A stretch of DNA of 64,000 nucleotides from Bigelowiella natans CCMP2755 (GCA_000320545.1 ADNK01000090.1:28692-92691), one strand, 5' to 3'. Shown: positions 25,156-40,330, counted from the first letter of the stretch. Notes: a model not told the origin generated them from the sequence alone. Translations and numbers: made by a program.

Positions 25156-26196
25156 GGGGGAGGGGGAGAGACCAATGGTGTAAGGTAATGAGAGAGCGCA
25201 AGTAGGGAAGACAGAGATAGAGAACGATAGACCAATATGAGTGACTTAAGAGCAGAGATATAAGAAGGAAATGCTTTCTTACTAAGGTCCCAAGAAGGAA
25301 TGATATCTTTTTCTTCCGAATTCATCAGTCTCACGATCTCCTCCGGCTCGAAGTGAAGTTTTGCAAAGGGCTCAGGACAGGGTTTTCTCCGCATTATCAA
25401 CGCTGCAACCATCGGGTGAGGATCGCGACATGTGAAAACGTACACACCCGAGAGTACCAGGATCATGCATGCAGAGATCGCTGCGAACTTGGCGCCGGCA
25501 TTGCACACCCTTTTGAGATAGAGTAGTATTAAGAGTTCGTTCCTTTTTCTCGTTGTCTTCACTTTGCATCGTTCCTTCGATTTGCCCGGTTTAGAAATGC
25601 CCTAAGGAATGACACCAACAAGGAGAGATTAAAGGAGAAGTAAACGGGAATCATGTGTTCCAGATGCACAGTTGAGAATTGGAATTCGGACGCCAAACAC
25701 ATCATACGACCCAACGAACGAAATTACCTCTTCCTGAGGCGGTGGAGGAGATTTGTCCTTGAGAATTTCGCTGGCAGGACCACGAAGTACGGAAGTGGGA
25801 GACCGCAATGGCCGGCGCGAAACAGTTACCGTTGGCGATGTCACTGTCGGCTCGGGCGTTGGCTTTGATGTGGGCGGTGCCAGTAAAGCAATGTTGTTGA
25901 TGTGGCCATTCGTAGTGAATGTTTGCGTTTCGCGGAATATGTCAGGAGCGGCGGCGGATATGGACGTTGGTGTTGATGGGCGAGGCACATGGCTAGATTC
26001 AGCAATTTGATGACGGGTATCGCCAAGGTTGGTTGTGCTGTGGTACGTGCAGAGTCATCACTTATGATGGTGATGATGATTGATGGTGATGTGTGTTAAC
26101 TAATTGACGATGAAAAACACAAACACACACACTCACACACACTCACACGCAAACACACTTTGGCCTTCCGGCGGCGCTCCTTCTCTTCTCCTCCAT
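23785..26196 (-). CDS. FAM20C/four-jointed-like atypical kinase with a type II membrane anchor
   Basis: Exons give MEEKRRSAAGRPN (ATG at 26196), a Ser/Pro/Thr-rich region, hydrophobic FAAISACMILVLSGVYVF, then VIWKP, STEAAAYAVDRMLGLERVPP, DMFDYLIGNIDR and YADHD. These match FAM20-type beta3 Lys, alphaC Glu (EIAAFHLDRILG.RRVPP), catalytic FDFL.GN.DR and Mg-binding Asp motifs. Confidence 0.65.
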
Positions 26197-26285
26197 CTGG
26201 ACACCACCGCCACTTCGTCAGTACAAAAAATACACAATAAAACCTACAATCACACACACACACACACACATGAACGTACACACAC

Positions 26286-26324
<39 letters not shown>

Positions 26325-28062
26325 ACATGCACACACCACGCCAAAAAATGCTACACCGCCTTCCGTAAGATCCACGCTTTTCCTGAGGATAAGTGGAAAA
26401 ACGTTGAAATGTTGAAAAGAACTCATGCCTTTTTGCAGAAAAAGCCTACAAAACCTCGTTTACTCCTTTAATCCCGGCATTTTCTAGACGGAAGCCAGTG
26501 TGTTCATGAATCGGAAGAACTTCGGTAAGAAGAAAGGGGTGTGACAACAATGTGATGCCCACTGTCAAATAGAACCCTTCTGAGATGAAATTAGGTAAAA
26601 ACACAACACACTTCCCAAGAAATCGCCGACAAATTAATTATTTGAGATCCTGTGTCAAAAAATATCGGGTGCCAAACGATTTCGTTGTCGCAGTCAAAAA
26701 GTCAAGAAAGAGCATCATCCGAAACCCATTTGCGCGGCTTCGTGCAAATGGCTTCGTGCAAATGGTTCTTGCGCATGCAGATTTGATCAATGCTTCATTC
26801 ATTGTTCATTGTTCATTATCTTGCTTCGTTCACACATTTGCACACGTGTGTGCATGATTCATCATGTGCATGACATGGATGAGATGAATTGATCGCACTT
26901 TTTCAATGCAGACACCATGCGTGGGTGTGCAAGCAGATGCGCAAACGCGTGCGCACGACAGTGCACGATGAAGGCAGGATTCATGTTCGTCCATCGTTTC
27001 ATGCCTCAAGTTCAAGCACAGGTGTTTGTTTGATTGACCTTGCGAAGTGGCAACCTGTGATTTGACAATGGACGTGCAACGATGACAACGTGTGTGCTGT
27101 GGAAGTCACGTGCACACAACTTGTGTCCACAGCTCTGCGTTTGACGAGTGTGCACATCGCACGCATCCAGGCATGTACGATGCTTGCTGAGATCTCACAC
27201 TGCTGCGTGCATTGCTCCATGCTAGCATGGCACCGTGGTGGACACAACGATCGTGTTGATCATCTGTGTGACGACTGCGCGGAGCATGATCATGGGAAAC
27301 ATCACATGTAGTTGAACAAAAGAAACATCACATGAATTGTGAATTGCATTGCTAGATTGTGCCCATGTTGCCGTTTGGGAAGACGGCTGCGTGCATCATT
27401 ACCCATGCCAGCATGCTGCTAGCACGTGCAGGCTTGCATGCACTCGTGCACATTGTCCAAGCGGCACAACGTTGTCCCGCTATCTAGCTCTCATCGCTGC
27501 AGCTCCAGAGACGATGCACACACACTCACATGCAGCTTCACAATGCAAACACAAAAGAGCGTGCGTGATCATCGTCTAACAGCGTGCACGTCGTCATCAA
27601 GCACACGACTTGCACATCAACCATTTCGCTGAAATCAGAGTTCATGTGTGGCGTGTAAGCTGGCAGACATGTGACTCTTAGTCGTGCACTTTGTCCGTAG
27701 CAAAACACATGAAAAAAGCTGCGATTCCGTGTCAACCATGATCATTTGCAAAGGGTGGGCAAGCTAGCTGTTTCTGGTGTCGTAGAGTGGCGTGTGGCTT
27801 TGATGAGCCCTTGTTGCAAAGAGTTGTAGACAAAATTGCAAGCATGCCCTGCTGTCATGGCACACTGCATCTAGGTCTAAAATTTCATAGTTTCACACAT
27901 TCATGCATGCGAAGCAAAAATGGGGTTGCAATGCAACGTTGAGTGTCATTCGCGACTTTCAATTTCAACATTTCGCAATTAGATCATGCAAGAGTACGAA
28001 AAGGGAAAAGGGTGGCTGGGCGTGAGGTTCGGCGACGGCGGGATGATTTACAAAGAGCACCG

Positions 28063-28950
28063 TCAATGTGTTGAATTGAAACGATCCATGTCTGTGAATC
28101 TAGGAGGCAAAGTGGGAACAGCTGTTCGCGCCTTCATGACCCTTGATGTTGCTTGGATGGCATAACTGCAACTATCTCTGCAAGGTGCAAATGTCATCGA
28201 GGTGTGCTCCTCAAAACCGTATCCTTTTCCAGTAGCTATGGCATCTTGATTCGCTCCCAAAAAGAATGCTGTGAAATCCTCTTCCTTGCGAGCCTTTTCA
28301 AGCTCGCGCTTGAGAGCTTCAGCCTTCTTCACGGACATGTTGTCCTCTCCGTCTGTGAGTAGCATGAAATTCTGGACAATCTTTCCAGGGGTCTTCTCAT
28401 CTGGCATTTCTTCTAAGCCCTCTAAGTGTAGTTTGACATTAGATTTCAGCTGTCCTAACCGTTCAAAGGCTGTGTCGATTAGTCTGGTCAGTCCTCTTGG
28501 CTTGAGCCACTGTTTCAAGTCCTTGTACGTTGGCAATTGGGCTTTCAAAACATCAACATTCTCTAATCGTATCTCGGCCTCATTATCGAAAGTAGTCAAT
28601 GAAACGAAGGTCGGAACTTTTGTCTCTTCTGCCGTTTTCTTTTGCTCGAGCAAGAGATTGAATATCTGCTCCACAGTTCCAGATCCCATAGCGGACATTG
28701 AGCCTGACCGGTCAATCACGATCTCTACGAAAGTTGCTATTGGTGGCTCATCATTCCGTGTATTTTGCTTCGATGAGGAAGCTGCTTTGGCCGTTACCGG
28801 AGATTTTGCGGTCTTAGGGAGCTGGACCCATTCATTTTCTTCGACAGCTAGACCTCTCTTTGAAGTCATTCCCTCTCGAGGTTGCTCACGATTGTGGTCT
28901 TCATCGTTCCTTTCAACAAATTTGGTATGTTGCTGACGTGTTGATGACAT
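28063..28950 (-). CDS. Intronless von Willebrand factor A (vWA) domain protein, bacterial/viral-like type
   Basis: 295-aa ORF with complete MIDAS: IVIDRSGSM, PRGLTRLIDT, FMLLTDGEDN, and C-terminal FFLGANQDAI..G.GYG. Confidence 0.85.
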   Translation of the reverse strand: MSSTRQQHTKFVERNDEDHNREQPREGMTSKRGLAVEENEWVQLPKTAKSPVTAKAASSSKQNTRNDEPPIATFVEIVIDRSGSMSAMGSGTVEQIFNLLLEQKKTAEETKVPTFVSLTTFDNEAEIRLENVDVLKAQLPTYKDLKQWLKPRGLTRLIDTAFERLGQLKSNVKLHLEGLEEMPDEKTPGKIVQNFMLLTDGEDNMSVKKAEALKRELEKARKEEDFTAFFLGANQDAIATGKGYGFEEHTSMTFAPCRDSCSYAIQATSRVMKARTAVPTLPPRFTDMDRFNSTH

Positions 28951-29000
28951 GTCTTCGTTCGGGTTGCGGTGGTCTTCGTTCGGGTTGTGGTGGTCTGCGT
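28951..29000. repeat. Short 21-bp tandem repeat (gtcttcgttcgggttg(c/t)ggtg, 2 copies plus a degenerate third) directly upstream of the vWA start codon
   Basis: Read directly at 28951-28971 and 28972-28992. Confidence 0.8.
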
Positions 29001-29242
29001 TCGTTGTTGGTCTACGTTCGGATTATGGTGGATGGGGGAGAGGAGAAGAAGTTCAACCGTCCTCGGCTTTGGAAAGATGAGGTGAAACGGAGGCGATTTC
29101 CCCCTCTCAGTGAGTCTTTTCTTGTGCTCATACATTTCTCGGGAACGAGAACAACAGAAGAAATGAAGAAGGAATCCTTCACGTAGAAAATATGGAAATT
29201 GCAGCGGATTTGTTCTGAACGACGATCTCATTTGACCATTTA

Positions 29243-29759
29243 ATGTCCAAGATTATCGTTTTTGGCCTCGATCGTTCGCCATCCTTCTTCTCAGCCGCAT
29301 CACCGAGAGACCATTTCGCTGACAAAAAGTGTGGGTGGCTTTATCGAATAGAGGGCAAATTTCACAGAAGACATCACCGTGAGTCGCAACATCCTGGAAA
29401 TCGCCTTGTCTCAAGTGCAAAATGTCCGAGGATCATTCTTGGTGTTCCATTTTCTGGAGAGAGAGAAACACAATTTGAGTCCAATCTTTGGTGGGGGCAT
29501 TTCAGTGAGAATTGAAATTGGGGCGGGCCACTTGTAAACATGTCGTATTCCAGAGGTCTCCCTATAAAACACAGATTTTCCAATAGATTTGCCGGTGTGT
29601 TGAAAGTGACAATCACAAGAGACTCTAACAACAAGGTTGCTATTGATGTTTTTAGTTTTGAGTTGGCGCGCGATGTGATGATAACAGTGTGTGCATGTGC
29701 ATGTGCATGTGCATGTGTGTGTGTGTGTGTGTGTGTGCGTGTGCATGTGTGCATGTGTG

Positions 29760-29795
<36 letters not shown>

Positions 29796-30997
29796 TGTAT
29801 ATTTTTGCATTCTGAACATTGCAATGCATCACATTGTGCACTCTGTGTGCTTTGTTTTCATTCTGCAATCTCTTTTGGACACCATGTTCTGTGCCATGTA
29901 ATGTTGTAATCTACATTTACATTGTGCATATTCTGCGCGCTTTGCTCTCATTCTGCTTTCTCTTTTCCACATTCTATGTCATGCGTTGTGTCTTAATTGT
30001 GGGCTCAATCAAACAGATCGCCAATTACGAACCTTTCAATCTTCATTTCGCACAAAACAATGATGGAAGGCTGGGAAGTTGGGAAGAATTCCGCGAAATA
30101 TTCGATGATAAAAAAGGCGAAACTGGAGGCATTATTTCTTCACGTGTAGAGTCAAAAATATGGGCATCTGAGATTAAATCTCAAGAAAGTTTCAAGAATT
30201 TCTCTTGTGAGAAAGTAATTAGGTATTTGACAGCTGTGCAGCATCTACACAACCTACATGACGACACTATAAAGCTTTTGAAAGACGAGGAAGTGGATGC
30301 TGAATTTCTCCTCGGAATGGAAAAGAAAGAGCTAAAAGAAATCTTGAAAAAGTCCGGGAGAGTTTTTCGAATCCAAAAAGTGTTAAAGAGCTTCAAATAT
30401 ACTTCAGGCTCTCTCAAAGACGACAAAGAGCATTTGAAAGTGATGTCGCTCAGACGTATTACGTTCACAAAAGCTACTATTTATGCAGCACCTCTACCCG
30501 GAAAGGCTGCAATTGAAGCGGGCCGAATCGCGTTGGAAGTGCTAACTTTAGGCCTAGCTTCTCTGTCCCGAGCAACAGCTGGAAATGCAAACCACTGGTT
30601 TGTTGTTCTTGAGGGAGAATTCACATCGATTTCAGAACGAGGTTCTTCTGTTAGAAAGTGCTACTGTGCGATTGACTACGGTGCAAGGGACGTGTTTACA
30701 ATGATGCAGGTTGCAGCGAAGGGCTTTGTGCAAAACATCACTCACAAAGTTCCAAACATTACCCTCTTCAACACAAAGGAAGATGCCCTTAACTTTCAAA
30801 AATGTCACAAAAATTCGCGAGTCTTTCGAAAAGGTTCTCAGAAGAAATTAAGGAAACCGATGACCCTTGAAGACATTGTGCACAATTTGTATACTGAGGG
30901 GAGTGAAACAAGGAAATCCATTCAACGTGGATACAAATGGGATTCTAACAATTGCCAACACTTTGCCACGAAGCTGATGAACCAGATAGCGGGTTGA
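29243..30997 (+). CDS. SAM-like domain + permuted papain-like (PPPDE/LRAT-type) domain protein; exon 1 contains an in-frame TGA, or the gene starts at ATG 29540
   Basis: Exon 1 (29243-29686) and exon 2 (30017-30997) join in phase 0 across a GT-AG intron. Exon 2 has a SAM-like segment (NFSCEKVIRYL...LLKDEEVDAEFLLGMEKKELKEIL..SGRVFRIQKVL), NHWFVVLE, and terminal YKWDSNNCQHFATKL. TGA is at 29513-29515. Confidence 0.6.
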
Positions 30998-31120
30998 AGC
31001 TCTTCGATCGATTCCATTAATGCAGTCTGGTGGAGCATGCACACGTAGACACAAAACCCAAGCTTAGCATGGTGGTGATAAAATGTGTAAGGGGCTGTTG
31101 TATTAATAGACATAGTGATA

Positions 31121-31233
31121 TGAGACGGATATGATGAAGTGATTCAATCTTTTCAATGGTCATTCTAATGAAGCTATACAAAGCTGCGGCTACAGCGCTT
31201 GTGTTGTATCTGTCTGTTTCTGCTGTTACATGC
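31121..31233. repeat. Dispersed repeat, copy 1 (other copy 47052-47164)
   Basis: Ungapped 113-bp alignment with about 22 mismatches (~80% identity), counted by hand. Confidence 0.85.
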
Positions 31234-31745: not shown

Positions 31746-32110
31746 TCACTTGTTCGCAGCATCGTAGAATCCGAGGTCAATTTTTACGCCACCGAAATCA
31801 TAGTATGTTGGTTTATGAGCCCCTCCGGATGCAGCCAACTTCTTAACTGATTGATATCAAGGAAATGATAGCGGAATTGATGCACAACACTACAGTGCTG
31901 CGTTTGCGTTGACAAATAAATGTGTACTGCATGTTTGATATAACAAAATTAAGTGAGGAAGAATACAGTTTTAACTTACCTATCTCCTTTGCGTTTATGT
32001 CATCTGGGGCGTTGGCGTCAAATGTTCCAGCTGTTGTGATGTAATGTTTCTTAAAAATCTTGGCGTGCTACGGCAAGTGTGTATGCAAGTTCAACACACA
32101 TTGCACGTAT

Positions 32111-32151
<41 letters not shown>

Positions 32152-33779
32152 TTATTTATATTTGTTTATTTATGTCCATAATTCTGATTTAATGAAACAC
32201 AGTCTTGTTCCATTCCCCAAACATCCCGAGCATGCACACATCCAGAGTAAAATTTCACCTATCCCTTTGCATATTTTAGAGATCTTTTGCTTCCCTGCCA
32301 GTGCTGCCATCTTCTTCATTGTAGGAACCTTCTCTCCTACCCAATTGATTAGAACAATTTTGCTGCGTACAGACTGGACGTTCTCGCGCACATCGACACC
32401 ATGAACATTCAAGCACACCCATGAGCACTTCGATTTGTCGAGTGCTTTCTTGAGGGCCTCGAGGCCTAGAGAAAAGCTAATTGAGTTGATGCTGCAAAAA
32501 GTCCCCAAACAAATATGGGTTACGTCGCAGGGTGGTGGGAAAGTATTCTGCGAACAAAACAGTGTTCTTTCCTCACAAAGATTTAGAGTAAGCTGAAACA
32601 CCTTGTCCTTTCGCGTCGACGACAAGCCTCTTCTTGGAACGAAGGCTGCTCACCATCCACTGGCCGGCGGTAGCGTCCTTTCGAGATATAGCAGCAAATA
32701 CTGCAGCTGGAGAGTCGTTCTTGATATCTCCATCCACAGATATTGTTGTTCGTTCAGCAGTCTCTTTTGTGTCGTCTTCGCTGATACATTCCTGAGCCTT
32801 GTCATCCGGGCCCGATTCTTTCTCCTCATACTTCTCCTCCTGCTCCGCCTTTGCCGCCAGCGCGGTCTTGATCGCGTTGTTGATGACATCTTGTATGCCC
32901 GTCTGATCTACCGCAGAGCACTCGAGATATCTGATAGAGAGACGGTGAAATCCATCAGTTCTAGGAAAAGCTGTCGCAACTGCACAGGTCTGGAGCGCAA
33001 GGTATACACATACAGCAAGTTGCTACAATGACCACCGACTTTGCGAAGCCCAGCTTCTCTGCTAAATCGTTTCCCATTTCAGGAGTGACAACAAATTGCC
33101 CTTTATTATCAAGATCTTCTCGGAGATCCGACTTCGTGCCGACAAGAATCTTGGGCACTTTGGGGCACTGATAGTTGATTATTCCCGTGTGAGAAACCTG
33201 CTTCTCTCCATTCGTTATTGGATTATTTCTCGCATTCATTTACATGTTTCTGAAGCTCCGGCACCCACTTTGATTTTACATTCTCTAGAGACTTTTCCGT
33301 ATCAATGGGGAAAAAGACAAGGAATATATCCGTTTCCGGGTACGCCCTGCAACGAATAAAACAATCAGGTGCCTGCATGGGGCGATGGTTGTTTTATTTC
33401 TGGGCGTTTGAAACTATACAGGGCTCTTGATTCGTAGGCATCATCCTGCCCTGCAGTGTCCCACAGTCCTTCAATAATGGTAAAACCATCGTCAAAATCA
33501 TGGTGCAGCAAACTTAAACCGTCCTATGCATGTTAGGGTGACATCCCGCTTTGTTACCAATATTAACTGCCTTATCGTCAACCAAGACGTTTGCGGAGTA
33601 CTCGTCGAAGACTTTTGGCACATACGCCCCAGGGAAAAAGTTAGTAGTGTACGTGATGACCATGCAGGTCTTGCCCCTGACGAATTATGATGGAGATGCT
33701 TGTAAGCCCACCAGGCGCAGGTTGCGTGAAGGCACTTACGCAGCTTCGTCGCCAACACAACGCACTTCAAGGTCTGCAT
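31746..33779 (-). CDS. Rho/Rac-family GTPase fused to a C-terminal coactosin-like ADF-H domain; 1-nt frameshift in exon 1
   Basis: Exons: MQTLKCVV(V)GDEAA|[39 protein letters not shown]|[17 protein letters not shown]|[28 protein letters not shown]|[16 protein letters not shown]..|[20 protein letters not shown], an acidic linker, then [13 protein letters not shown]..|[50 protein letters not shown]..|..[18 protein letters not shown]. All joins are GT-AG and in phase. Confidence 0.85.
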
Positions 33780-34106
33780 CGTTGAGATATGAGCAGATGC
33801 GAGTCGGGTATGCACAGGCACGTCCATCTGTCTCAAACTGGCCCCATCTGCACGCTGCGGCAGCCTGCTCGGCACACTCAAGTAGCGGATTTCGGGCGGA
33901 ACGAACGAACTGCCTCAAAACCCGATCCCCAACGGAAAATCGGATAATCACAGGCCGTTTTTACCGTTTTTAGACGGTTATTTCAGGATCTCCAGATAAT
34001 CTCCTGAAACGGGCCTGTGGCAGTCGATCGCCCTTAAGCGCCTCTGGACGAGGAGGACCCAGACCTGTTGATAATTAGGAAGAAGAAGAACAAGAATCGT
34101 CGCTAA

Positions 34107-35578
34107 ATGGAACGCCACTCGCCCTCACAAGCCGTCTGCCTTGCGGCCTGCGCGACGTTGGCCTACGCTGTAGTTCGGATTTCCAGCCGATCCAATCGAG
34201 GCGGCGAACAGAGCAGCGAAACAGAGCAGGATGCGGACACGAAAGCGAGCGGCGAGGGCAGCAAGGGCAGCGTGCGCATTTGTGCCACCGACGCCCCGTG
34301 CATTGTTACGATGCAGGTAATTACGAGCAAGTTTGACTCCACAAATGGGATGCGCTGCCTGTCATTGCGGCGTGTTTCAGTGATTCGATCTTTACCCGTC
34401 GGTGCAGACGGAGGGGTGCCTTCTGGATTATACATGTTTTTGCTACATGTCTTGCTAGCCCCTCACCATTACAAATCTTATATTTCGATGAGAGGACGCG
34501 ACTGAAGCCCTAACGCCGTCATTACCCTGCTTCCCCTCCTCCTCCTCCTCCCCCCCATTTACTTTCATCTGCCTTCTTGAATCCTGGCAGAACTTGATGA
34601 AAGGGTCGTCAGACGTGTCGAAACTGAGTCAGGGTATTGTACACTGGAAGGTACTGCTGCTATAAATTGAAAAGTCTTGTGAAAGGAAGCGAGAGAGACC
34701 GGGAGAGACCGAGAGAAAATGCAGAGCGAGTTAATTTATACATATCGTTCTGTTTCCCTGTACTCTCCTACCCAACCTCTCATAGCCACCGAAGGAGTCT
34801 CTCGAACGAGCGCGAAAGGCGTTGACCACCGATGAGATCCATGGCTACGGCAATGACGAAGGGTGCACTTGTCCTCTTACACAGCACCTCGTGTTCCTTC
34901 ATTTATCAACCGAGCTTTTGACTCCCATGTTTCTGGGTGGAAATAATGCTGTTACGGATGCGTACGGATAAGGGGAATCGTAAGACTACTGCTTAGTCCG
35001 ATTGTACATGTTTTCGCAGGTCTGCTGAGCTTCGGGGAGCTATCAAAAGAAAACTGGCGCGGGAAAACGGCATTAAGAACTCTGAGGTCCGTTACTCATG
35101 AAGATCTGCCCCCGCCCCCCTCTCTCCTTCTCTCTCTCTCTGATTTTTCATCATAACGGAAATTATTAACCCCCTATCCTCTCCTCCCTTGATCGTGACC
35201 AGGTGATGGTGACTTGTGGGGCAAACCAAGCCTTCGCCAACGTGATTCTTTCTTTGGCAGACCACAGCGACGCAGTAAGTGATGCGAGTGTAGGACGCCG
35301 CAGCAGATAAAATTTAGAAATAACTAAAATTGACCTCATCTGATTGGTCGCATGGAATTAGAATGTAGCCGATGAGAACACCGAGAAACTCCTTCAACAG
35401 CAGCCTATAATTCAATTTTTGGTTCGCCATCGCACGGATGATCTCCTCGTCACCATCACCTCCTCCCCCCCCCCCCCTCCTCAGGTAGTTTTGTTCCCGC
35501 CGTACTACTTTAACCACCTCATGGCCGTGCAGATGACGGGGTTAGGAGCTGAACGACCCTGCTTTCTCCCACTTTTAT

Positions 35579-35618
<40 letters not shown>

Positions 35619-35681
35619 TGTGCGTGTGATGATATTTAATAGAAGTACATCGCGCACACAAATTACACCCGGATTTACATA

Positions 35682-35718
<37 letters not shown>

Positions 35719-36253
35719 TAATACACGTGTCCATATTGCGTGATCCTAACGCGCTTTCAGAGGGTTTCATACGGTTGAGATGGGCAAGACAGACCCGAAG
35801 ACAATGGAGCCGGTACGAGCACTAGCTACTTCTTAGAGGGGGCAGAGAGGAGAGGAGGGGGGTAGAGAAGGATCATCGATAAAGCCTAGCAGCATTAGTA
35901 CTAGTTGTGCTGCACCCACCTACGCACAGTGGAGAGAGAGTACATGGCCCCTTCCCCCCCCACACACACACCACCACCACATATAGAGCGCGGAGTGGCT
36001 CGAGAGACGCCTTGCCCAGCAGCAAAGATCCCCCCCCTCGTCGCCATCTCTATCACCGCCTTCTCCGAAGATCACGGTCCCTGGGAAGAGAGGGAGGGTC
36101 GCCGCAGTGGTGCTCTCCAATCCATGCAACCCAACTGGTAGTAGCAGTAGTAGTCGTAGTAGTAGTTGTTGTTGTAGTAGTAGTGGTAGTAGTAGTATAA
36201 GGTCACTGTCGCCGTTGTAGGGGAAATTACGCATAATTATTCATAATTCCAAC

Positions 36254-36300
<47 letters not shown>

Positions 36301-36891
36301 CATCAGAAGTACATAGATCGAATTCAATGCGGAAAGAGAAGTGATGCCTCTCGCAGCGCTTGGAAGCTCTCGCAATGGCTGATTTTATCGGTTTTCCGTG
36401 CCCGCTGTGATGGTACGTAGGAGTGGTCACAGACGGGAAGGTCCTCGCGCGGATATCCAGAGCATGTATAATACGCATCGTTCCCTCCCACTTCGCTGAT
36501 CCACGCCATTTTGCGACGCAAATTACGCGGCGGTTTGTGTTCCCCGACAAGGCCAGAATGCGCCTCGCGGGGGGCACATCCGATCGGTGTTTCAAGCGCG
36601 TCTGTTATTTTTCCGTTTTTTTTGCGGTCAATTCTGGGGAATCCATCCATGCACCCCCCACCTGGGCAGAATGGAAGGGACACGAGGAATTGCGACTCAC
36701 CCGCTTAACCGCCAAAAATAAAACTAGTTGAGGAAGGGATTTCCGGTGTCATTTTGGGCCCGTTGCGGGCTAGACTCCGCGACGAAAACAAACCTCTCCA
36801 TTCTCCATTGCTTTGTTGTTGGCGCGTAGGTGAAAAGGCCGGTGTTTGGCTGATTTTAGACAACACCTATGAGTAAGCAATTCTAGTTGTT

Positions 36892-36924
<33 letters not shown>

Positions 36925-38923
36925 ATGGTGGTGGTGGTAGTAGTATAGTAGTGATGGTGGTAATAATGTTATCGTGTGTAGCAGCAAGATACTTTTGAAT
37001 ATAGTTATACGCTCTCTACTCCAGGTACTTTACATACAATAAGCACTGCCCGCACGTCTGCTTGGAGGCGCCGCACATCGTGAACATATTTAGCTTCTCG
37101 AAGGTTGGGAACACTGATAGGAAGTAGAACGGGATCCTGGTTCGCATTGGGATGCACTGAAGGAGGGGGGGGGGGGACGTTTTGTGGGAACAGAAATTTT
37201 TTATGAGTCTGATTGTTCTACCGCCATGTGGGAGTTTCACGTTCTTCGCTTGTTTGCTGTCTACTGCTGTTTTCCACTCACACATAAAGGCTTTCGGAAT
37301 GATGGGATGGCGTGTTGGGTAGGCACGGGCACACCAAGATGCACATAGCACAACACACACACAAACGCACATACACGTACACATACACACACACACACAA
37401 ACAACACGCTCACACCTCACTTTCACATTCAAATCCATCCTACAAAGCACTTTGCGTGCTTGAAGCACCAATAATAGAGAAACCCCCTTCTTCCTCTTCA
37501 AATCCTCCGCCCCCCCCCTCCCCCTGTTTGCTCTGAACCATATAATATTTGTGTGCTGATGCTCAAGAGAGGTTGACCTATGACCTACATTATGTTCCCG
37601 TCAAATGCTAAAATTCGTCGTCGTCGCTGCTTTCAGCTACATAGCCTACCACCGCTCCCTAAGGAACTCCCTACTAAAAGCCCAGGACACCATTCCTATC
37701 TGCCCGACACAAATTAGGTATGCACAGCACAGGGATAGTTGAAAAGAGAGTTAGGATTGGGACGGGGGGGGAGGGGGGGTCAATTTTAGATGTAGTAGGT
37801 TGACCGTTCATCGCCGTGAAATGCAGCGTTCTCTAATGTGACAGTGAGAAAATGGCTCTGGGAGCGCTGGAGGCAGGTGTGTTGCGATGCTTCCTCAACC
37901 CCACCCTCCCCCCCCTTTGGAGTATGCTTAGAGTGGAAGATGATGATGATGAGCAGGAGGCCTTTTTTATCCGATGTTCTCCCGGGCTAAAATTGCTTTA
38001 TTTTTCTTGAAGCCAACGGCGAGTTTTTTGGTCTCTTGCAGCACGGCCCCGGCCTCTTACATACTAGCACTTTGTCAGAGCATATAATATATACATATGC
38101 GTGAGTGTGTGTGTGTGTGTGTGTAGTATATCAATATGTACATACGTCCGCTCTGCTGTGTTTTGGAAAGCTTTCTTCTGGTTCCGAAAACCCATCGCAT
38201 GCGATTGATTTTAGCATGTTTTATCGACACCGTGGCGGGGGTAATTCGTTCGTTTCCCTTGTGTGTTGCCAATACGCTGCTAGGGAGAGAGTGGGTGCTT
38301 TCTAAGCTGCCGTCTTTGGGTAATAGCTAGCATATTGCATCGGATATTCCCTTCCTAAATAGCACCTTTCACCTACGTATTTCTCTCTCGCCTTCTCCCC
38401 CCCCCCCCCTCTCCTAATTTTATCTATGTGGGTGGCTATTCATGTTGTCGTAGTGAGGAATCGTGATTTGCTGCTTGAGGCGTTGAAGCCGCTACGCGTG
38501 ATCGGGGGCCAGGTGGTTGCCATGTTACAACCTGCGAGCGTGTGCAGAGGCGCACGGATGTATCTGATTTTGAATTTTATTAATCTGTGGGTAATGCGAA
38601 CTAAGGGCGCTATTTACCTATTCGTGGAGCTCCCGGAGAAATATAGGAACCATGATATGAAGGCAAGAAACTGCGCACACACACATACACAGCACGCCCA
38701 CAACAGCACGTCGTACATAAGCGGCCAGATGAACTTCCTACTAACGATATTCGCTTCCTCCAGCCTCCTGACCCCTCCCCCTCCCCCCCAATCTCTGGCC
38801 TTTGGTGTACATATTGTGACTAGGTCGTAAAATGGGTTGCGAACACTCACAAAGTAGGGCACCGAACACCGAGAATCCACATGCCTTTTTCATTCCGCAA
38901 TCTGGCGCGAAAATAATCACACA

Positions 38924-38970
<47 letters not shown>

Positions 38971-39296
38971 GGGGGGGGCGGGGGAGCGATGTAAATATAA
39001 GCAGTAGAACATATATACACATACAGCATTTCCGTGCGGAACATCTTCTGATGGGGTCCGTCTCGAAATGGTTGTTTTTTAGGTCGGGTTGATCCCTGGA
39101 AGTAGCTGTGGAGCCCCTGGATATGTGCGCGTGGCCTTCGCGAATATGGTGACCCACGTGTTCCTCTCTCTCTATATTCTACCGTCAAATATTTTCGTTT
39201 GTTTATTTTCGCTTTTGTGAAACTAAGGTCGGGCCCGACATGCAACGAGCCGCCGCGAGGCTTAAGAAAGCGGTATTGGGGACGAATGTAGTATAA
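34107..39296 (+). CDS. Class I/II PLP-dependent aminotransferase (plant ISS1/VAS1-like) with N-terminal hydrophobic segment
   Basis: About 17 exons give TDAPCIVTMQ, LSQGIVHWK|PP, YGNDEG, VMVTCGANQAF, PYYFNHLMA, VVLSNPCNPTG, WLILDNTYE, NIFSFSK|AFGMMGWRVG (PLP lysine), QDTIPIC, GAIYLF and IPGSSCGAPGYVRVAF. The last exon is uncertain. Confidence 0.9.
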
Positions 39297-40330
39297 CCTG
39301 CTAGCGCACATTTCTCGCATATTAGCATTAGTGCAAATACAGCGAGAGTTCCATCTGGACTGTTACTTCGCTATCGATTGTCGATTCCTTTGTTTGGCGT
39401 GGCTCTGCACCTTAGATGTTGCTTCCTTTAGGTGGCGCAGTTGGTTGATCCCAAAGAATCTCCGACATTTTGAGTCCCGGCACGTCTTTTTTTTTGGATT
39501 TGTTTACCGATCTCCTGTACTCCTCCGGAGTAAGGAAACTCAGCTACTGCTGCTGCTGCTGCTGCTGCTGCGGCTGCGAGTCGCATGATGTTCTCATTAG
39601 GCTTCAAACTTTGGATAATCGTAATATGAAGCTTCCGCCGCGATATGTGTTCACTCTCCCACAACTGTTATGTTGTACATATTCCTGCGTGGTCTCCATG
39701 TCAATGCATCATTTTTAGATGTTGACGCGCTGCATTCCGGCGTCACATGCACAGACAGTCCGTGGCCATTTTTTCTCGGTTGCATGCGCGCACACATGAA
39801 ATGGCTAAGTCGCCTTGATCTGAACGCTATGGGGACTTGGCGCTGTGTTAGCCATGTGTGCAATTAGAGACGCGCTCGCAGATGCAGCTTAGCTAGGCTA
39901 CAAGTCATAGCTACATTGCTCATTGCGTCTTTGGCGCTATTTCTGCAGATGAAAGGTGACAGAATACAATATGCCCGCAAAAGTATTCGAGATTATGCAG
40001 CATGTAATTCGCGTCACAGCTCAGTTCTATGCAAGCCACGCTGCGAGCAAGCTAGATTGGTAGGAAATCTAAATGATGCAGCATCGCAGTGTGTGCACAC
40101 CATGCCTACGAGGCATTCGATACTTATTCTGTTATTTACTTGTTAGTTTTTAGAACATGTAGCCATATGTGACCTTACAGGTGGATGATCGATCTCACGA
40201 TGAAAGCGGTGCATAGACGACAAATCCTTCAACGAAATAAATACGCTGCGCACCGCACCGTTCTCTAACCTACCGATGGATGAAGCTCATTTCGCGTCGC
40301 GCCCGCCCGCTCGAGCCAACCACTAAACCT

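Follow-up and report, generated by a model that had tools for sequence, protein, structure and literature searches.

In the usual view, the site of action of Rho GTPases is the membrane, with prenyl groups as anchors and effectors as separate proteins. The family also has atypical members: RhoBTB proteins carry BTB domains besides the Rho domain and are not prenylated, and in Rnd and RhoH changes at positions 12, 59 or 61 cause GTPase deficiency. Coactosin, drebrin and Abp1, which contain an actin-depolymerising factor homology (ADF-H) domain, bind to the sides of actin filaments. A stretch of 64,000 nt from Bigelowiella natans CCMP2755 (GCA_000320545.1 ADNK01000090.1:28692-92691; hereafter the window, with positions counted from its first letter) was analysed and found to carry a gene on the minus strand (33779-31746) in which, at the DNA level, a single exon carries the fusion of a Rac-like domain with an ADF-H domain.

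The fusion protein shares with human Rac1, Rac2 and Cdc42 the MQTLKCVV start, the GKTC, DTAGQ, TKSD and ECSA motifs and the signature TTNxFPG.Y.P.VFD.YSANV. It differs from them in having Glu12, Lys35, a divergent switch II, a Rho insert shorter by 6 residues and approximately 200 extra C-terminal residues, and in lacking both the polybasic region and the CAAX box. As in RhoBTB, a domain other than a GTPase comes after the Rho G domain and the CAAX box is absent, whereas the partner is ADF-H instead of BTB; Ras and Cofilin_ADF were the only Pfam families found and no BTB domain was detected. A residue other than Gly at position 12 is shared with Rnd and RhoH, but the fusion keeps Gln61 and loses Thr35, a combination atypical of these proteins. 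The single ADF-H domain with a LINWVGE core resembles those of coactosin (COTL1), drebrin and Abp1; unlike in those proteins, it sits behind a GTPase, and no match to it was found among proteins of 83-264 amino acids (aa) in 5.8 billion clusters.

An ADF domain is named among the domains of Dictyostelium CRIB proteins in a figure legend of PMC8847673. As far as that legend goes, Rac-family signalling is coupled to an ADF-type module there as well, although by a non-covalent Rac-CRIB link and not within one polypeptide, and Rac effectors with actin-binding modules in trans are the closest idea in the literature. The initial annotation knew of no described Rho-ADF-H fusion, and no description of a Rho/Rac-ADF-H fusion was found in the full-text literature, a search not made by domain architecture and so no proof that the architecture is uncatalogued. 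The architecture is that of an atypical multidomain Rho protein with a new partner domain, present at a single locus and with no known orthologues.

Gene structure and the junction exon

Three-frame translation and direct reading of the DNA gave nine exons. All eight introns had GT-AG borders (8/8) and their lengths ranged from 63 to 228 nt. The features of the gene are listed below with their window coordinates; matches to named GTPases are to solved structures.

33740..33779, minus strand: exon 1, with ATG at 33779, MQTLKCVV, the two bases TT at 33755-33754 and GDEAA of the P-loop (Glu12 at 33747-33745); direct reading.
33558..33676, minus strand: exon 2, with P-loop GKTC, switch I YVPKVFDEY (Lys35 at 33615-33613) and strand beta2/3; Pfam Ras E 8e-5, Rac1/2/3 E 1e-14.
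33420..33468, minus strand: exon 3, with LWDTAGQ (G3, Gln61 kept) and the divergent switch II DDAYESRAL; direct reading, spliced model and tblastn of the model to the window.
33244..33346, minus strand: exon 4, ending in KWVPELQKH and equivalent to Rac/Cdc42 residues 71-104; Pfam Ras E 6e-4, Cdc42 E 1.5e-8, Rac1 E 3e-7.
33040..33167, minus strand: exon 5, with TKSD (G4) and a Rho insert 6 residues shorter; RhoA 105-150 E 3e-4, Pfam Ras E 3e-3.
32602..32930, minus strand: exon 6, the junction exon, with YLECSA (G5), helix alpha5, the linker and the first ~45 ADF-H residues; 109 codons without a stop.
32717..32857, minus strand: acidic linker within exon 6, residues 172-218 (47 aa, 16 Asp+Glu and 7 Lys+Arg), from its composition and a predicted local distance difference test score (pLDDT) <50 over most of its length.
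32259..32465, minus strand: exon 7, the ADF-H core including VLINWVGE; Pfam Cofilin_ADF E 4e-9.
31980..32030, minus strand: exon 8, 51 nt, probably the last ADF-H strand with the beginning of the last helix; frame-keeping GT-AG pairing.
31746..31846, minus strand: exon 9, the C-terminal tail ending in YDAANK, with TGA at 31748-31746 and no CAAX box; direct reading.

The fusion itself lies in exon 6, one unbroken exon of 329 nt that runs without a stop from YLECSA and helix alpha5 across the linker into the ADF-H domain. The initial annotation had described a complete Rac-like G domain that continues in the same exon (given there as 32927-32603) through an acidic linker of about 45 aa into a coactosin-type ADF-H domain, with no C-terminal CAAX box. 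The passage from one domain to the other within exon 6, the acidic linker and the CAAX-free C-terminus were all recovered here, so the observation holds for the fusion; the word complete does not fit the G domain, which has a frameshift at codon 9, Glu12, Lys35 and the shortened Rho insert.

Adjacent Rac and coactosin genes misread as one, or a chimeric assembly, would be an extremely improbable source of this arrangement. Nothing besides the absence of an annotated model favours such an artefact, and against it the end of the Rac part (G5 motif and helix alpha5) shares one unbroken exon with the linker and the ADF-H N-terminus, with neither a stop nor a CAAX box, and no repeat or second copy was present in the window.

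The coding frame contained no stop in 366 codons, compared to 13 and 20 stops when these exons are read in the two alternative frames, and the introns contained 40 stops in 905 codons. The GC content was 0.49 in the exons and 0.39 in the introns. When the spliced model was searched against the window with tblastn, all nine exons were recovered and no second copy or paralogue of the fusion gene was found in the window. Exon 8 had no independent database match and is the sole GT-AG pairing that preserves the frame between exons 7 and 9. The locus is a genuine eukaryotic protein-coding structure and not a chance open reading frame (ORF).

Two of the introns had features of their own. Intron 7 was the longest (228 nt) and the most AT-rich (GC 0.30), with a (TA)n microsatellite of ~40 nt at 32111-32150. 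Retention of intron 5 (33040-32960) would end the Rac part in a Cys-rich tail of 29 residues without G5, an alternative product that is conceivable but probably meaningless. The Rfam scan of the window gave no match.

The Rac-like domain, the linker and the ADF-H domain

Pfam Ras was matched by exons 2, 4 and 5. The nearest solved structures were Rac1/2/3 for exon 2, with 27 of its 39 residues identical to Rac1/2, Cdc42 and then Rac1 for exon 4, and RhoA for exon 5 with a 6-residue gap in the Rho insert, and residues 1-33 of exon 6 aligned with Rac2 154-186. The top solved relatives of exons 2, 4 and 5 are thus members of the Rho family (Rac, Cdc42 and RhoA), which places the domain with Rho rather than with Ras, Rab or Arf. 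The G3 (DTAGQ, exon 3), G4 (TKSD, exon 5) and G5 (ECSA, exon 6) motifs were all present in the spliced model. The P-loop GDEAAGKT spans the junction of exons 1 and 2 and is out of the ATG frame by one base. The Rho insert, typically ~13 residues between beta5 and alpha4, is present and is shorter than that of RhoA.

Residue 12 is Glu where the canonical P-loop has Gly. In switch I, YVPKVFD aligns with YIPTVFD of Rac1/2, and the codon AAA places Lys at position 35, where the Rho family has an invariant Thr. Switch II was unlike that of Rac at 8 of 13 positions. In Ras-superfamily GTPases, Thr35 couples the gamma-phosphate and Mg2+ to switch I and is required for GTP-dependent closure, and a residue other than Gly at position 12 blocks hydrolysis assisted by GTPase-activating proteins (GAPs). 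Because of Glu12, Lys35 and the altered switch II, a normal GTP/GDP cycle of the fusion protein is unlikely. Nucleotide binding would probably be kept, as GKT, DTAGQ, TKSD and ECSA are intact.

The single-chain switch tethered to actin filaments that the initial annotation had proposed was therefore only partly upheld: the in-exon fusion, the linker and the missing CAAX box agree with it, and Glu12, Lys35 and switch II make the switch doubtful. A working GTP/GDP switch, whose nucleotide state would control, or be read out at, actin filaments via the tethered ADF-H domain, is improbable. It would be in keeping with the four intact motifs, including the conserved Gln61, with a switch I that is otherwise Rac-like, with the high identity of exon 2 to Rac1/2 and with a fusion made inside one exon. 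These points are opposed by the replacement of Thr35 by Lys and of Gly12 by Glu, by the divergence of switch II, and by the established requirement for Thr35 in switch I closure and for Gly12 in GAP-assisted hydrolysis.

The linker stands where an ordinary Rac has its polybasic/CAAX tail, and no Pfam family matched it. No CAAX box was found, and downstream of the G domain there is a single Cys, which is part of the linker (QECISED) and distant from the protein's C-terminus. QECISED was considered as a relic CAAX box and was rejected, since its context is acidic and the motif is not at the protein end. A single-sequence AlphaFold2 model of exon 6, of low confidence (mean pLDDT 54), gave a helix at residues 9-30, disorder at 31-60, a helix at 74-82 and strands at 89-94 and 99-104; the order of helix and beta-hairpin in this low-confidence model is as expected for the start of an ADF-H domain.

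Exon 7 alone matched Pfam Cofilin_ADF (PF00241) with 36.6 bits, above the gathering cut-off of 22.4, over profile positions 42-105 of 125. The best solved structure for exon 7 was the drebrin ADF-H domain (E 8e-4, 22.9 bits), followed by cofilins (~14 bits) and coactosin-like protein (13.9 bits). The exon 6 tail and exon 9 had no sequence matches in Pfam or among solved structures, so database support is limited to the central 68 ADF-H residues; the exon 9 tail presumably resembles the coactosin C-terminus. The domain is an ADF-H domain, probably of the drebrin/Abp1/coactosin kind; by these scores its subclass may be coactosin, drebrin/Abp1 or cofilin.

Actin binding, nucleotide state and partners of the protein are inferred from these features. 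The ADF-H domain would place the protein on the sides of actin filaments and not on membranes, and with an acidic linker in place of the polybasic/CAAX tail the protein would neither reside on membranes nor be a RhoGDI client. The G domain is likely to retain nucleotide binding, with GTP hydrolysis and normal closure of switch I unlikely. On the most economical view, the protein would be bound constitutively to filaments and would dock Rac partners (guanine nucleotide exchange factors, GAPs or effectors) or serve as a decoy for them, without being a cycling switch, much as in the logic of the multidomain or GTPase-deficient atypical Rho proteins RhoBTB, Rnd and RhoH.

The frameshift at codon 9 and the state of the gene

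The coding sequence had 1127 nt (3n-1), one base below 376 codons. After ATG..GTG (33779-33756), which encodes the canonical Rac/Cdc42 start MQTLKCVV, only the two bases TT stand at codon 9, followed by GGC GAC GAA GCT GC/GTAAGT (the slash marks the splice border). The ATG frame and the P-loop are therefore out of register by one base. The strong GTAAGT donor of exon 1 gives GDEAAGKTC with exon 2 only in a frame shifted relative to the ATG, and this shifted frame is open for ~75 codons upstream without an ATG. Alternative donors and acceptors that could rescue the ATG frame were sought and rejected, as the sole in-phase donors (AA/GTGCGT and AA/GTGCCT) delete or destroy the P-loop. Since the donor fits the shifted frame only, no ATG lies upstream and the in-phase donors remove the P-loop, the assembly has a one-base deletion in codon 9, which is either real or an assembly error.

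A different structure of the gene is very unlikely. An unseen upstream exon could be spliced into the acceptor GATGCAG/AC to give an N-terminus in the GDEAA frame, or separate Rac-only and ADF-H-only products could be made. The open GDEAA frame upstream and the pyrimidine-rich stretch that precedes the AG at 33774 are in favour of the former; however, the likeness of the ATG frame to the canonical Rac/Cdc42 start is too close for chance, and an Arg would occupy the buried beta1 strand. Separate products are opposed by the loss of the G5 motif and helix alpha5 on retention of intron 5, and by the lack of an internal start ahead of the ADF-H domain.

The degree of intactness of the gene was set against neutral decay. 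Substitutions that create a stop make up 4.3% of those possible in this coding sequence, and hits on the 16 splice dinucleotides would also be disabling. A gene under neutral divergence of 1% would stay this intact with a probability of ~0.45, which falls to ~0.2 for a divergence of 2% and to ~0.02 for one of 5%. The lack of any stop in the coding frame (366 codons), where the alternative frames have 13 and 20, argues that the gene was shaped by selection and that, if dead, it died recently. The ADF-H part, very divergent and yet open and correctly spliced, has long been under selection for an open frame. Glu12 and Lys35 would be part of an older, selected atypical state, as so small a neutral divergence (a few percent) is unlikely to have hit both positions by chance.

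The searches for relatives and transcripts gave the following. Exon 6 had no phmmer hit in 1.84 billion representative proteins; the probe is weak, being made of a Rho tail of 25 residues, a low-complexity linker and a poorly conserved ADF-H start, and this negative says little on distant fusions, one of which could hide behind a Rac cluster representative. Among proteins of 197-626 aa none contained exon 6, as judged with a crude identity-level query in which exon 6 was aligned to an unrelated neighbour of 358 aa and only that neighbour and its paralogue were scored. For the ADF-H core of exon 7, a word-index search of the 83-264 aa proteins (query a stop-free frame of 151 aa, region 55-122) returned 13 candidates, none of which scored, and among proteins of this size there was also no stand-alone close paralogue of the core. 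Exons 6 and 7 had no match in JGI metagenome contigs in scans made without a positive control, and exon 7 had none in viral contigs; an MMETSP contig of the neighbouring gene was obtained from JGI sample 3300017170 with another tool. The protein collection includes entries of the neighbouring gene from JGI Bigna1, EukProt and MMETSP, yet nothing containing exon 6 or 7. The fusion locus thus appears to be without a gene model and without an assembled transcript in the collections searched.

Bigelowiella natans has flagellate swimming cells, in contrast to the amoeboid cells of other chlorarachniophytes (PMC12730881). The flagellate lifestyle is in line with silencing or ongoing loss of the gene in this species, and it weakens the argument of the initial annotation that a filament-tethered switch would suit an organism with filose or reticulose pseudopodia.

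A dead relic, that is, a Rac-ADF-H gene unused in the flagellate B. natans and decaying, with the frameshift, Glu12 and Lys35 as inactivating lesions, is a serious alternative, although on balance an unlikely one. The frameshift at codon 9, the single-base nature of Lys35 and Glu12 at the two most critical switch positions, the lack of any gene model or transcript ORF where the same collection includes JGI, EukProt and MMETSP entries for the neighbour, the lack of a match in JGI contigs and the swimming flagellate cells (PMC12730881) are all consistent with it. Against decay, no further lesion was found: with no stop in 366 codons and all 16 splice dinucleotides intact, neutral decay is limited to a few percent, a divergence within which the chance loss of both Gly12 and Thr35 is unlikely, and the frameshift could be an assembly error. 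An untranscribed pseudogene, which the initial annotation had named as an outcome that would overturn its proposal, was not established, and with no gene model or transcript ORF containing exon 6 or 7 it is a live possibility.

A lineage-specific Rac-ADF-H gene fusion in the nuclear genome of B. natans, without a membrane anchor, is the best explanation of the locus and has about an even chance of being correct. That the gene encodes a working atypical fusion protein now, or did so until very recently, is an evenly balanced proposition, and at present the gene is either silent or expressed at a particular stage, with the deletion as an assembly error, or a pseudogene of very recent origin. Several observations weigh against a working fusion. 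These are the one-base frameshift at codon 9; the codons of Glu12 and Lys35, each one nucleotide from Gly or Thr, which could be recent damage; the lack of proteins with exon 6 in both searches (1.84 billion representatives; 197-626 aa) and of exon 7 relatives of 83-264 aa; the lack of matches to either exon in the JGI metagenome contigs, with no positive control; and the flagellate form of B. natans (PMC12730881). A broader proposal, in which a filament-resident Rac module, localised by its own F-actin-binding domain in place of a lipid anchor, recruits or traps Rac regulators on actin, is conserved in amoeboid chlorarachniophytes or Rhizaria and is expressed at a stage unsampled in B. natans cultures, is rather unlikely.

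Components of Rho signalling are strongly expanded in Rhizaria (PMC5499878). Covalent linkage of a Rac to a domain that binds actin filaments would position Rho signalling in the cell in a different manner, would provide a natural example of a pseudo-switch that serves as a cytoskeletal adaptor, and would be a further instance of the shuffling of GTPase domains in Rhizaria. Its weight is modest because it concerns one unannotated, frameshifted locus in one genome, and the fusion would gain interest only with transcripts or orthologues.

Genomic surroundings

The fusion gene borders a gene-poor, repeat-rich stretch, as ~6 kb upstream of it (33900-40300) contained no convincing ORF or exon and several simple repeats (poly-Val, SLSLSL and CVCVCV in translation). 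The TpA observed/expected ratio was 0.32-0.39 and that of TpG 1.3-1.8 at window positions 26001-30000, compared to ~0.6-1.0 and ~1.1 elsewhere in the window. An effect of this TpA depletion on the fusion gene was rejected, as the TpA observed/expected ratio over the gene was ordinary (0.62-0.72).

On the other side, a neighbouring gene on the plus strand (29819-30994) is convergent with the fusion gene. It had 97% identity to EP00466_Bigelowiella_natans_P014875, which is jgi/Bigna1/85072, and was also present as an MMETSP transcript. Five neighbouring ORFs, including model 85072, had no Pfam family, and a paralogue of model 85072 with 74% identity lies on the same scaffold (model 85051). A contig of 2948 nt from JGI sample 3300017170 (Ga0186113_100841; MMETSP/IMG, near-identical strain) matched the window at 29710-31210 with its bases 1456-2948 at 98.6% identity. 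Bases 1-1455 of the same contig, with called ORFs of 112 and 234 aa, had no match in the window, so that either the contig is a chimera or the region is arranged differently in that strain.

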